From contig NC_088803.1 in NCBI RefSeq assembly GCF_011386835.1, positions 44,950,001 to 45,014,000 of the forward strand: a DNA stretch of 64,000 nt. Direction: 5' to 3'. The DNA comes from Chrysemys picta bellii. Its lineage: Eukaryota. Each line of letters opens with the position of its first letter. The stretch's first letter is position 1. Below, one piece after another: positions 37,126 to 64,000 of the stretch. Made by a program: the position numbers and the translations under genes. The notes below the pieces were generated by a model. That model ran no database searches. It worked only from the letters and a program-made list of their open reading frames with translations, and had not been told where the DNA came from.

Positions 37126-37986
37126 TTAAAGAGCTCTGACAGAGAGGTCCTGAGATGCTAAAGAGGTGAGATTGGAAAGGTCCAGAGAAACTGAAGAGGT
37201 GAGAGAAGCGGCATCCTGAAAGGTGAGGTCAGAGAGGTCCAGAAAGGGTGAAGAGATGAGATTAGAAACATCCAGAGAGGTTGATAAGGATAAATCAGAG
37301 GAACGCTGAGATGTTAAAGTGTTAAAATTAGTGAGGTCTAGTGAGGGTGAAGAGGTCGAAGAGGTGAGATCAGATACATTCAGAGAGGGTGAAGAGACTC
37401 CATAAGGAAGGTCCAAGGAAGTTGAAGAGGTATGACTGGAGACGTCTAGGGAGGGTGAAGATGAGAGACTGGAGAGATCCAAGGAGGCAGAAGAAGTGGG
37501 ACTGGAGAGGTCCAAGGATACTGAAGAGCTGGGATTAGAAAGGTCCAGAGAGCCCGAAAAGGTGAGACTGGAAAGGTCCAATGAAACTGAAGAAGTGAGA
37601 CTGGAGAGTTGCAAGGAATCTGAAGATGTGAGACTGGAGAGCTCCAAGGAAAGTGAAGTGGTGATGCTGGAGACATCCAGAGAGGCCAAAGAGCTGCAAC
37701 TAGAGAGGTCCAGAGAAGATGAAGAGGCGAGATCAGAGAGGTCCAGGGAGGATGAAGAAGTGTTGCTTGAGAGGTCCAAAGAATCTGAGGAGCTGAGACT
37801 GGAGAGGTCCAATGAATCTGAAAAGGTGAGTTTGGAAAGTTCTAAGGAGGCTGAAGACTCAAAAATGGAGGGGTCCAGGGAGGCCAAAAAGGTGAGACCA
37901 TGGAGATCCAGGGAGACTGAAGAGACTGAAAAGCCAAGTAAATCCACAAAATGATTGGCGTTTTATACGATCGTAGGCAGGTTCAG
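37126..37986 (-). CDS. Candidate large exon encoding a Ser/Leu/Asp decapeptide repeat (SLDLSSLTSS)n
   Basis: 30-nt degenerate tandem repeat; one - strand frame is open for 273 codons; the conserved Leu is encoded by CTG, TTG, CTA and TTA; acceptor ttttag| ends at 37987 but is one base out of frame with the repeat ORF. Confidence 0.55.
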
Positions 37987-59176: not shown

Positions 59177-59673
59177 GGCAATGGGGGTGTTACCTACTGC
59201 AAAGTTAATGGCTTCCACCCATGGTGCATAGGTAAAAGTAGCAATTACGATGCAGAAGGTTCCTTTTAAGCAGGAAGGTGGCACGTGCTCTAAAAGCTTG
59301 TAGAGAAACATCAGATTGAACGGGGGAGGGAAAGCACAATTATCCAATTAAATTTATACAAAAAGCAAACGACTACAGGTAGTAGTAGCACCTGCTTTAT
59401 TTCTAAAAGTGAATTAACTCCTAGCCATTTAAATATTACATTCAGGACAAACTATTTCCCACCACCTCTCTACCCTGAGCCTTAAGACCTACACTAGTGT
59501 TTTTTTTCTTTCCAGTGTCACAGCAAGTTCTCTACGTTAGTGTTTAATACACCCCAGTCCTGTTCATTCTAATAAACTGAATCCTAATCGGATTTTAAAA
59601 AATCCAGCCATCTCAAAAAAGCACAAGTAGTCAATAGTCCAGAGTGAGAATGTCTTTTCTTGGAAGTACGAGT

Positions 59674-59847
59674 TTAGTGTTCAGCTGCTTTATAAACTGG
59701 TGGGAAAATCCTCCTTGAGTTCTTCTTAACCCATGGATGTTTTATTATTTCTTTGAGAGACAGCCTCAAAGAAGGAGTGCGCTTAAGTGTTTTTGAAATA
59801 AGGTCCTTAGCACCATCAGGCATCCATGTGGGAAATGTGAATTTAAC
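59674..59847 (-). CDS. Aurora B/C-like kinase, last exon
   Basis: Acceptor cccccag|; VKFTFPTWMPDGAKDLISKTLKRTPSLRLSLKEIIKHPWVKKNSRRIFPPVYKAAEH then TAA; AATAAA on - at 59396-59401. Confidence 0.92.
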   Translation of the reverse strand, partial: VKFTFPTWMPDGAKDLISKTLKRTPSLRLSLKEIIKHPWVKKNSRRIFPPVYKAAEH

Positions 59848-61977
59848 CTGGGGGGAGGGAGGTGAGGGAAAAAAAAAGAAGAGAATATTAGTTCCACCAG
59901 GTAACAACAGGTATGATGCAAGTACAATGAATAGTATAATATCACCTAGGAGCCTGCGTCATGGACCAGGACCCCAATGCACTAGGTGCTGTACAAACAG
60001 AATGAAGGTGTTGGGGGAAGATAGTCTTTGCTCGAGAAAGCTTGCAATCGAACTATAAGACAAACTGACACAGGAGACAGCACTGGTCAGCACAATAGAC
60101 TGTGGTCTCGACCACTGCTTGGTGTCTAGTGTGCTAAGTTTTTGTAGTCTTCACAGCTACAAAAAGTACTGCTTAACGGGTAACGAGTGATGTAACAATA
60201 TTACCAAAGCCAGGCAATTCCAGGATAGTAAATTAGTGTCTTAAAAAAAAAAACACGACGAAAATGCAAGCGTGTTACTGACAGTTAAGATTTGGAATGC
60301 ATACAAGTCTGATAGCGTATAGTTGGGTTATGATGACAACAACTGAATTTCAATGAAAAGTAAGATTCTTTGTGTGCTCCAGAATTACACTGCAACATCT
60401 CCTATACCAGATCATTGTCAGAGCAGCCACAGACTAGATCTAATCACAACAACTTTATCTGATATACTTTTAACCCTGATTAATGTGCAAAATAAGATCG
60501 ATGTTTCTGGCATAATACACTTCCAATTATCTGTGATACAGTGTGCACATTACAGTCACACAGTCAAGGACACTAGCTGATAGTGTTCACTGGAATAAAT
60601 TGGTTGGCTGCTTAATTTTAAAGAGACATTTTGTACTGAGCAGTGTGGAAGACAGAATTAATGAAGGAGAGTAATCTTCATTGAATAAGGCCAGTATTAG
60701 AACCAACTGGTACACTTTGTATCTGTATCCCTAGTCTTCAATATATTTATCTACATTTGTTCATCCCCCTCCACCATGTCAATTTTGCAGATAGAAAAGA
60801 TATTACAGCCTCAGTCTTGCTCCCCTTCAAATCAATGGCAAAATTCCATAGATATATGGATACAAGACAAGGCCCCAAATCTATATCCAAGATGATCCAC
60901 TGTTTCAAATTAGGTAGTTTACATCTTGTCACCACTTTTCACCCCAAACTCCTTACAAAAAAGGAGCAGCTGTCTGAAGCACATCCAACACTAATTTAGA
61001 TTTAACAGTTTTGCCATATGTATTGCCAGTTGAAGTGCCACAGTATGTGTTTGTGCTATTTTTAGTAACTAGGTAGCACAATTGATGAGTGCTTCAGTAA
61101 AAGGGAGTGCCTCACATTACTATTTAAGGACTCTTGTTGATTTAAGAACGAGTCCATGTGCTCTGAAGGCATCTTTATCCAACCCTGCTCAACTACAGAC
61201 TTTGAAGAGGGAAATGGTAAGGGCAAGAAAAAGTAACCAGGATTTTCTCATAATAAACAATGTTATTTTGACATTGTTCTGAAGATTTTAACTGGGAATG
61301 TCAGGGATCCTAATGAATACAGAGATGGTATCAAACAAGATGCCCAGTTCTCTGTAATGCACTCTGACAGTGCTTTAACCAGTCATGTTTAAGGCCAACA
61401 AAATCAAAACCCAAGCAGTGTCTGATTCTAAAGAAGAGACTTTATTGGCCTGGTTATCAGTGGTGCTGACAGTTGTGGGTTCCTAGTCTAATCTTTTATA
61501 TGATTAGGTTATTTGTAGGCTTGCCAGAATTTGATTTTTATATAATTCAATAAGTATCAAATGTTTAAGCTTTTTTCCATTTTTATCAATTTAAATTTTC
61601 ACAGTTGCAGAAAATTGGGGCGGGGGGGGAGAGAAAAATCAGACAATTATTTAATGACAGATGGCGAGATTCAAAAAGTTTAAGTGTTATAACCACTAAA
61701 ACACAAAGTTGTCAACATCAGTCAAAATATACAAAGTAAATATCCTTAAAGCACAAAGTTCTCAAGCAGCATTTTTCGTACTTTGCCTATCTGTAAACTT
61801 TGATCATCATCAATTAAGCTATTATTTCATTAGTTTGTGCGTACCATGAAATCATCTTTCCCTGATTTAAAAAAAAAAAAAAATCCTTCGGAGCCTAATT
61901 ATTTGTTTGCCTGTCGGAGGTGGTTTTCTTTGCTCTCAAAACCAAGTAACCTCTTCCATGGATTTAGGAAAGCTTAC

Positions 61978-62152
61978 CTCTGCAATTCTTTTGTATGTTT
62001 CATTGCGGGTGGGTGCTTCAAATGGCGCATACCCCACAAGACACTCAAAACATAGAACACCAACACACCAGACATCAACATTTTCATCATGGGTTCTCCC
62101 ATCAATCATTTCTGGGGCAAGGTAATCAGTCGTGCCACAAAATGTTGTCCTC
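61978..62152 (-). CDS. Aurora-like kinase exon (activation segment to helix G)
   Basis: 175 nt, AG/GT bounded; [58 protein letters not shown]. Confidence 0.94.
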
Positions 62153-63191
62153 CTGTTGAAAAAATAAATCACCAGTCATTTTGTTGCATTAAAATAAGGT
62201 AGAGTAAATTTATCAATAACTGATTTACTGCGCACATCCACACCCAATTTAGAACTTTAGGGGCCAGATTTGGACCCACTAGAATCAGAGCTGTTTTGAA
62301 GATCTTGCCCGAGGTAGGATGTCAGCTTTGTGGCCTAGGTGTGGGGAAAGTAGATTAGCTTCTGTCTCCATCCTAGGAAGTGCTTTACTTACCCAGCAAT
62401 TAACCTTCTGACCAATTAAGGCCCAAACTTTCAAAATTGTGTATGCAAGCTGCGTGACTCCGTGCATATAGTTTCTTAAGTTTCAGTCTAAAGGAGTAGT
62501 TTTGATTAGGGACTAGACATAACTCCTGAAGCCAGAGATCTAGATTAGGTCAAACAGAAGCTACATGAGGGGTTGGGCTACAGAGTCAAAAACATTCTCT
62601 TAGTGCTTCATGAAAGACAAGAGGCACTTATATGGCTCCATGACAGTAATATTACAGACTATAGTCTGTGTCGCAAGAATCTTCGGAAAAAAATAAATAT
62701 TCTAATATCTAAGAAAAGCCATATGCACTGTTTTGCTTTCTTTCCTCAAAGTGCCAGTCAAGGTGTAGAGATAGCCAGCCTTGAAGGAGAGCTTCTCTCA
62801 GCTGTTGGTCCTGGGGCTACTGACAAACCTCTCTGCTCATGCTGTCTCAGGGACCATGTAGTGGAAGCAAAGCAGGACACAAGGACTATACTTTTCATGC
62901 CTTTGTAGAGGCCAGGAGGATTCATTTCAGTGTTCAAGGGACCACACAACCTTGAACCAATCCTGCTCCTCCTTGCTCACCATCAGTGGTGTCACAATCC
63001 AATGATTGTCCACAGTTCATTTCTTTGGAGACAATTATGTGGCATCAGTGAATCAAGATGAGAGGATTAGGATATTAGACAGATTTTTACCCAAATGTTG
63101 TCAGTGGAGGAGCTGTAAATACAGGATAGTCAAATAGAGACTGAGTCCATATAGTAGTGGTCTTACAATTGAAAAGAGGAGTCAGACTCAC

Positions 63192-63340
63192 CTGAGTGAC
63201 GGAGCATGCACGGACCAGCCAAAGTCTGCTAACTTCAGTTCCCCTTTAAGTCCTAGCAGGAGGTTTTCAGGCTTGATATCTCGGTGGATCACTTTCTGAG
63301 CATGGCAGTATATCAGAGCATCAGATATTTCTTCTACATA
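63192..63340 (-). CDS. Aurora-like kinase exon (HRD and DFG motifs)
   Basis: 149 nt, AG/GT bounded; [49 protein letters not shown](R). Confidence 0.95.
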
Positions 63341-63817
63341 CTGCAGAATGTGCCACACCCAAGAGAATTATACAGTCAAACACAGTTTATGTAGTGGTTT
63401 TCTATAGGAAATATGACTTAGCCATTTAGTAAGTTAAATACAAACCTTGTTGTGGCTCAGCAGTGAGTGATTTGGTTTGATATTTACCATGTTTGTTTGG
63501 ATATTGCTTGTAAGAGTTGCGTAGAAAGCTAATGATAGTACTATATAAAACCAGGGATGGATGTACTGAACCTTTGAAGATTAGAAAGAAGCCTTGCCAC
63601 ATCTTGGCAATTCCTGGCTCTATCCAGGAACTGGAACGTTGGCAGTCACGCGAGACACTTTGTGAGCAAGATATTTCCAACTAGTTTTACTTAGGCAAGA
63701 TGATTTGTTCTGCATACAAACCCAGAGTGTATGCCTACAGTGCATACATTATAGTAGTTCCAAGATGAGATTCCATTCCCCTTCACAAAACATAAGCAGC
63801 ATCAACGCTTTACTCAC

Positions 63818-63956
63818 CGTGGCAGTTCTAGTCTCCTCAAAATGCTCATGTTTTTGCAACTCTTTGTACAGCTCCCCTCCTGGAGCATATTCCAACATCA
63901 GGTAGATCCGTGTTCTGTCGTGAAAGTAGTTATAAAATCTCAAAATATTTGGATGC
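63818..63956 (-). CDS. Aurora-like kinase exon (hinge); upstream exons lie outside the window
   Basis: 139 nt, AG/GT bounded; [46 protein letters not shown]. Confidence 0.95.
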
Positions 63957-64000
63957 CTAAAAAAGCCAGAAAGGACACGTTTGGTAGCTGAAAATCAAAC

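Follow-up and report, generated by a model that had tools for sequence, protein, structure and literature searches.

The window analyzed in the present study is a stretch of 64,000 nucleotides from the painted turtle Chrysemys picta bellii (NC_088803.1, positions 44,950,001 to 45,014,000, forward strand). The minus strand near the end of this window carries the last four coding exons of a protein kinase gene, which were read from the sequence and are 139, 149, 175, and 174 nt in length (Table 1). The 5' part of the gene runs past the window end at 64000, and the first exons are outside the window. Every exon has an AG acceptor, and a GT donor is present wherever an intron comes next. The exon phases agree, and one AGG codon is split over the junction of the 149- and 175-nt exons. 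We consider it likely that 59674-63956 represents the 3' half of a third, functional Aurora gene in the painted turtle, which belongs to an old B-type lineage. We refer to this gene as the third kinase.

Table 1. Features of the third kinase gene and the adjacent PRELID3B gene in the window
Feature	Position	Strand	Remarks
Exon W, fourth-from-last coding exon, 139 nt	63956-63818	-	End of the N-lobe and hinge; EYAPGGEL, TAT; splice sites read from sequence
Exon X, 149 nt	63340-63192	-	Alpha-D/E, catalytic loop, start of the activation loop (SVHAPSL); splice sites
Exon Y, 175 nt	62152-61978	-	Activation-loop RRTT threonines and changed activation segment; splice sites
Exon Z, last exon, 171 nt plus TAA stop (59676-59674)	59847-59674	-	C-terminal HPWVKKNSRRIFPPVY tail
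3' UTR	59673-59380	-	AATAAA at 59401-59396; contigs of runs X1, X3, and X4 reach 59380, 59418, and 59421 from 59845
Alternative upstream exon within the 149/175 intron	62392-62920	-	Joint 62151 to 62392 (skips 240); two related species, runs X3 and X7 only
PRELID3B coding exon, synteny anchor	56277-56110	-	Flanked by an AG acceptor and a GT donor; approximately 3.4 kb beyond the stop codon of the kinase

The window exons were searched singly, and the full-length protein was represented by the database proteins P0460 (Chrysemys) and P0273 (Gopherus). In searches of PDB sequences, the best match was Xenopus AURKB-A for the 139-nt exon and the last exon, human AURKB for the 149-nt exon, and human AURKC for the 175-nt exon, with AURKB second. 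AURKA scored lower than Aurora B/C for each of the four exons. The top hits were all Aurora A, B, or C, with E values down to 2.6e-137 for full-length P0460, which scored 460 bits with Xenopus AURKB, 442 with human AURKB, 431 with AURKC, and 430 or less with AURKA. An earlier note on this DNA, made from the letters alone, had described an Aurora exon architecture and argued that the gene is not a retrocopy. This description held: the exon series 192(189)/139/149/175/17x with phases 2,0,2,0 is common to the orthologues of tortoise, skink, and the frog Ascaphus as well as to AURKB of the turtle Emys and of Callorhinchus (elephant shark). Since all of these genes agree in exon sizes and phases, the copies arose by duplication at the DNA level. 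The motifs quoted in the earlier note were all present in the translations, including NSRRIFPP near the C terminus.

P0460 (XP_023970684.2), which NCBI lists for Chrysemys picta bellii under the misleading name "aurora kinase C-like isoform X1", contains the translations of all four exons without a mismatch. A public model of the gene therefore exists. A profile search with a distant seed and the four exons as separate rows (alignment A1) retrieved turtle proteins labeled "aurora kinase C-like", among them the Gopherus orthologue P0273, which was identical to the window exons at 208 of 210 residues. The exons were 96-99% identical to the turtle proteins of the reptile (R) clade described below. 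Because the same 210 residues matched no canonical AURKB compared at more than 70.5% identity, and turtle AURKB at approximately 67-70%, the window kinase is not the canonical AURKB of turtles. A word search seeded with pike AURKB retrieved canonical AURKB only, from fishes to mammals and including several turtles. An exhaustive search of representatives with the last exon alone returned fragments and 50%-cluster representatives only and did not identify the gene; the best match was P0001, a 67-aa fragment on genomic contig L001 with 65% identity and a colubrid-like tail.

In the annotated Chrysemys isoform X2 (P0388), TAT is followed by KVIHRD and the first 15 codons of the 149-nt exon are skipped, as they are in isoforms listed for Chelonia and Dermochelys. 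P0388 points to an inner acceptor, with the 149-nt exon starting at 63295, which would remove part of alpha-D/E. No splice joint for this acceptor (63295-63340) was present among the transcript contigs of four runs. The 90%-identity cluster of P0273 includes P0460 and, in addition, AIG1-like ("androgen-induced gene 1 protein-like") proteins encoded on the same contigs; the presumed cause is a read-through model bridging the neighboring genes. This co-clustering is an artefact that could mislead automated annotation.

The third kinase is under strong purifying selection. With counts summed exon by exon, the comparison with Gopherus gave 13 synonymous and 2 non-synonymous differences in 210 codons (dN/dS 0.04), and dN/dS was 0.08 against Tiliqua. 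The gene is also transcribed and spliced as predicted. Transcript contigs from four runs of three species contained the joints 59845 to 61976, 62151 to 63191, and 63340 to 63818, which are exactly the predicted exon junctions; the first of these was present in all four runs. The skipped stretches have the ends CT..AC, namely GT..AG on the minus strand, and one spliced contig extends 621 nt further 5', past the window. These contigs show exons joined without introns, which in itself points to a spliced transcript. The end of the transcript appears to be near 59380-59420.

The alternative upstream exon may be an alternative first exon or mark an internal promoter, giving a transcript without the N-lobe. 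Contigs over 62392-62857/62920 reached depths of 232 and 91.6 in X3 and X7, respectively, matching or exceeding the depths over the 3' exons, and the upstream kinase exons were weak in one of these runs. The list of open reading frames shows stops in 62392-62920 and no frame running through it. Two further observations were made in the transcript contigs. At 59677, all four runs, including those labeled as the window species, have T instead of G on the plus strand, so that the final codon encodes not His but Gln, the residue also present in Gopherus; the His of the assembly is an allele or an error. In the intronic segment 61675-61830, contig depth was very high and loose ends were numerous in each of the four runs, a signal typical of an interspersed repeat that is expressed or present elsewhere in the genome.

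The sequence motifs of an Aurora kinase are intact. HRDIKPEN and DFGWS are encoded in exon X, and ALKVIFK and QLRREIEI are present in full-length P0460; the catalytic lysine, the alpha-C glutamate (RREIE), and the HRD and DFG motifs are all kept. PF00069 is assigned to Gopherus P0273 (precomputed), and the context of the RRTT activation threonine spans the 149/175 exon junction. The window also encodes FYNYF, the Asn of which is kept in 18 of 18 proteins of the R/B2 lineage, namely the R clade and its relatives described below. We take this Asn to occupy the position of AURKB Asn142 and AURKA Gly198, which selects INCENP over TPX2. The residues of AURKC that contact the phosphorylated TSS motif of INCENP are Arg90, Glu93, His97, His190, Ser193, Leu194, and Arg196 (PMC6639382), and the corresponding residues, in RREIEILSH and SVHAPSLRR, are all present in P0460.

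Other segments differ from canonical AURKB. Of 18 R/B2 proteins, 17 have no N-terminal KEN box, whereas 13 of the 14 canonical AURKB proteins compared have one; the exception is a partial coelacanth sequence. The glycine loop is GKGRFG[TAS]VY in the R clade, whereas it is invariantly GKGKFGNVY in canonical AURKB. Similarly, the alpha-D region reads EEISDAL versus EELADAL, and the activation segment RRTT.CGT[TP]DYLAPEM versus RR[KR]TMCGTLDYLPPEM. The kinase of Ascaphus and the coelacanth protein have EEISDAL and keep the ancestral activation segment. The pattern is one of rapid change along the reptile stem and of tight conservation thereafter.

The third kinase, AURKA, and canonical AURKB are separate genes in turtles. 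In Chelonia mydas, Chelonoidis abingdonii, and Mauremys reevesii, AURKA and the third kinase are on one chromosome-size contig, and canonical AURKB is on another, smaller one. The third kinase is accordingly not the sole AURKB or AURKA of these turtles, and the view of the earlier note that it is additional stood. In the genome of Chrysemys, the expected separate loci were recovered in part: AURKA is on the same 55.6-Mb contig as the third kinase, but the canonical AURKB of Chrysemys itself was not among the cluster listings; the closest one found was that of the emydid Emys. The third kinase is on AURKA's chromosome in turtles and squamates.

The neighborhood of the third kinase is also distinct. 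PRELID3B, which the earlier note had placed next to the gene, lies downstream on the same strand and is followed by ATP5F1E on that strand, TUBB1 on the plus strand, and CTSZ, an order that we take to be that of human 20q13.32. A PRELI-domain gene lies 3' of the kinase on the same strand at distances of 1.2 kb in Gopherus, 2.1 kb in Tiliqua, and 3.5 kb in Ascaphus. The order in Gopherus is an AIG1-like gene, 18 kb, the kinase, 1.2 kb, and PRELID3B. In Ascaphus, the kinase is between an AIG1-like gene and the PRELI-domain gene, with all three on one strand. The B-type Aurora of Callorhinchus adjoins a Rabaptin gene, and the AURKB models of Caretta and Prochilodus are fused to a TMEM107 domain. 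The adjacency of TMEM107 to canonical AURKB comes from these two fused models only, and the TMEM107 part was not found within 10 kb of Emys AURKB. Rabaptin (RABEP1) and TMEM107 are neighbors of human AURKB, in a 17p13-type neighborhood. The third kinase is not in such a neighborhood, but between the AIG1-like gene and PRELID3B.

Several features were noted in the intergenic DNA. The G+C content is 0.57 at 56-58 kb of the window, presumably the promoter region of PRELID3B. Between the 5' end of PRELID3B and the 3' end of the kinase, the G+C-rich segment 57800-59100 contains several direct and inverted copies of a CLRAGLPERYRLRAAP-like unit, seen in the open reading frame listings of both strands; the copies represent a local or dispersed repeat. 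On the minus strand, 37126-37947 is a long open frame made up of (SLDLSSLTSS)-like repeats, in the interval between PRELID3B and ATP5F1E.

A word search with P0273 revealed orthologues with 71-85% identity in the tuatara, geckos, a skink, an amphisbaenian, an agamid, a python, colubrids, and vipers. The proposal of a divergent Aurora paralogue retained in reptiles is borne out by its presence in turtles, tuatara, and squamates. No orthologue from a bird, crocodilian, or mammal was among the best 120 matches listed to P0273, which are annotated proteins. A maximum-likelihood (ML) tree of 78 rows and 269 columns, with plant Auroras as the outgroup, contained an AURKA clade (97/86) and a clade of all B-type Auroras (93/94), within which chondrichthyans branched first. 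The R clade (100/99) was joined with the Ascaphus protein P0408 and a second coelacanth protein, P0427 (98/92). This group was sister (92/90) to a canonical bony-vertebrate AURKB clade comprising the first coelacanth protein, lungfish, fishes, amphibians, all amniote AURKB, and the AURKC-like mammalian representatives. When the two long rows (Ascaphus and coelacanth) were left out, the R clade kept the same place outside bony-vertebrate canonical AURKB, and the B-type clade had a support of 96/94.

The Ascaphus kinase shares the derived motifs EEISDAL, YLMLE, and GAKDLI with the R clade. Since a frog has the kinase at the same position, the R/B2 lineage predates amniotes, and perhaps also the coelacanth split. 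The alternative offered in the earlier note, a lineage-specific transposed duplicate, is contradicted by the presence of the gene in turtles, tuatara, and squamates and by the positional orthologue in Ascaphus. A bolder proposal is that B2 is a fourth ancestral vertebrate Aurora lineage of pre-tetrapod, possibly pre-bony-vertebrate, origin. Mammals, archosaurs, and most amphibians would each have lost it independently, and reptiles would have kept it as a specialized passenger kinase without a KEN box, e.g. a meiotic or early-embryonic one, as an independent counterpart of eutherian AURKC. We regard this proposal as possible but doubtful.

A separate AURKA-like protein was noted in the snake Erythrolamprus reginae (P0073, P0270). 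Its label is "aurora kinase C-like isoform X2"; it shares 90% identity with the AURKA of the same species and is encoded on another chromosome-size contig. It has the appearance of a recent, misnamed duplicate of AURKA that is specific to this lineage.

The reading of the third kinase as the species' own AURKB ("AURKBC") at a non-mammalian position would fit a published survey, in which only AKA and AKBC are listed for Chrysemys picta bellii (PMC5796022). It would also fit the best scores of the exons with AURKB in the PDB searches and the missing Chrysemys entry in the cluster listings. However, the canonical AURKB of other turtles, among them the emydid Emys, shows only approximately 67-70% identity to the third kinase; the two genes are on different chromosomes in three turtle species; and each group forms a well-supported clade of its own. 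This reading is already refuted for turtles as a group, and we give it almost no chance of being correct. A younger duplicate of AURKB, specific to amniotes or sauropsids, that evolved rapidly at first and was drawn to a deep position by long-branch attraction is very improbable. The Ascaphus kinase has the three shared motifs in the same AIG1-like/kinase/PRELI arrangement and orientation, and the R clade stays outside bony-vertebrate canonical AURKB without the long rows. On the other side are the stem branch of 0.34 changes per column, the restriction of secure members to lepidosaurs and turtles, and the marginal rejection of an amniote-only origin: a forced amniote-only duplication was 19.8 lnL worse with an approximately unbiased (AU) test p=0.0335, and is thus weakly rejected.

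It also appears unlikely that the third kinase is a local duplicate of AURKA on the 20q13-like chromosome that gained B-like residues secondarily. The chromosome shared with AURKA in turtles and squamates, the AURKA-like RRTT, and the Tyr after TAT could be cited for this explanation, and the AU test does not reject a union of the R clade with AURKA. However, this Tyr is also present in AURKB of fish, gar, and elephant shark, and hence is no evidence for AURKA. Both ML trees join the third kinase with B-type Auroras, and the Asn at the site of AURKA Gly198, APSL, the NSRR..PP tail, and the higher AURKB scores in the PDB searches also argue for a B-type origin. The B-type assignment, which the earlier note made from diagnostic residues, is based on these residues, the scores, and the tree; the term "B-type" is favored but not secure.

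We note the following points against our reading of the third kinase as a functional gene of an old B-type lineage. The forced union of the R clade with AURKA costs 9.1 lnL with an AU p=0.218 over 269 columns, and is not rejected. The R clade has a long stem, the Ascaphus and coelacanth rows are long branches, and long-branch attraction could inflate the apparent age of the R/B2 lineage. The second coelacanth protein was placed by its sequence. The absence of the lineage in birds, crocodilians, mammals, other amphibians, and ray-finned fishes comes from the best 120 matches listed, which are annotated proteins and not loci. The runs that yielded the transcript contigs are presumed to be RNA, with coded tissues. 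The INCENP-contact residues are weak discriminators because most are also present in AURKA; only Leu194 distinguishes the two. Binding of the INCENP IN-box, kinase activity, and localization are predictions; the IN-box would activate the third kinase as it does AURKB/AURKC, and the protein would be a catalytic subunit of the chromosomal passenger complex.

The conserved residues suggest that the third kinase is an active Ser/Thr kinase. Because it has no N-terminal KEN degron and its glycine loop and activation segment are remodeled, it may be a specialized, possibly germline or embryonic, counterpart of AURKB. It would then be analogous, not orthologous, to eutherian AURKC. The third kinase is probably an INCENP-dependent kinase with a specialized role.

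Previous studies assigned two Auroras to cold-blooded vertebrates, AURKA and "AURKBC", and considered the third gene to be a eutherian invention (PMC5796022, PMC8470780). We found no paper describing the present lineage in the literature on reptile or turtle AURKC, "aurora kinase C-like", and AURKB with PRELID3B/ZNF831. The two-gene model for non-mammalian vertebrates is revised by this third Aurora, which is strongly conserved among turtles, tuatara, and squamates and is shared with a frog. Birds have been stated to have lost AURKBC (PMC8470780, PMC5796022). However, bird "aurora kinase C-like" proteins (Columba, Patagioenas, Dromaius, and Cairina) fell in the canonical AURKB clade of our ML tree, and antibodies have been raised against chicken Aurora B (PMC2806593); therefore, the published loss in birds is contradicted. 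Since annotation labels the third kinase and true AURKB interchangeably as "aurora kinase B", "C", and "C-like", reptile orthology tables and comparative studies on the chromosomal passenger complex need care. With its altered glycine loop and activation segment and its lack of a KEN degron, the third kinase is also a natural experiment among B-type Auroras, through which the retention of two passenger-type kinases in some lineages can be addressed.

The third kinase extends a well-known family and is not a new kind of system. It resembles canonical AURKB in its kinase fold motifs, exon sizes and phases, Asn at the selectivity site, APSL, NSRR..PP tail, INCENP TSS-binding residues, and best PDB matches. 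In contrast to canonical AURKB, to which it is 67-70% identical, it belongs to a separate clade, is located beside PRELID3B and not at a TMEM107/RABEP1-type locus, has no KEN box, and has a changed glycine loop, EEISDAL, and a changed activation segment. With AURKA, it shares the chromosome, the RRTT of the activation loop, and approximately 69% identity in the kinase domain, whereas it has Asn instead of Gly at the TPX2-selectivity site, Leu instead of Ser in APSL, a B-type tail, and a short N terminus.

The AIG1-like gene beside the kinase is AIG-L, a neighbor in the same PRELID3B-ZNF831 interval with a broadly similar retention in non-mammals, although it belongs to an unrelated protein family. 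AIG-L has been described between PRELID3B and ZNF831 and as lost in eutherians and neognath birds, with no mention of the adjoining kinase (PMC8394805). Gene-loss histories of this interval now include a kinase besides AIG-L. The origin of AURKC has been dated to eutherians (PMC5796022, PMC8470780). Eutherian AURKC and the third kinase are both extra B-type Auroras without a KEN box, the third kinase carries the database label "aurora kinase C(-like)", and its 175-nt exon matched human AURKC marginally best. However, the best matches to human AURKC nest within mammalian AURKB (98/94), far from the R clade, and the third kinase is not orthologous to eutherian AURKC.

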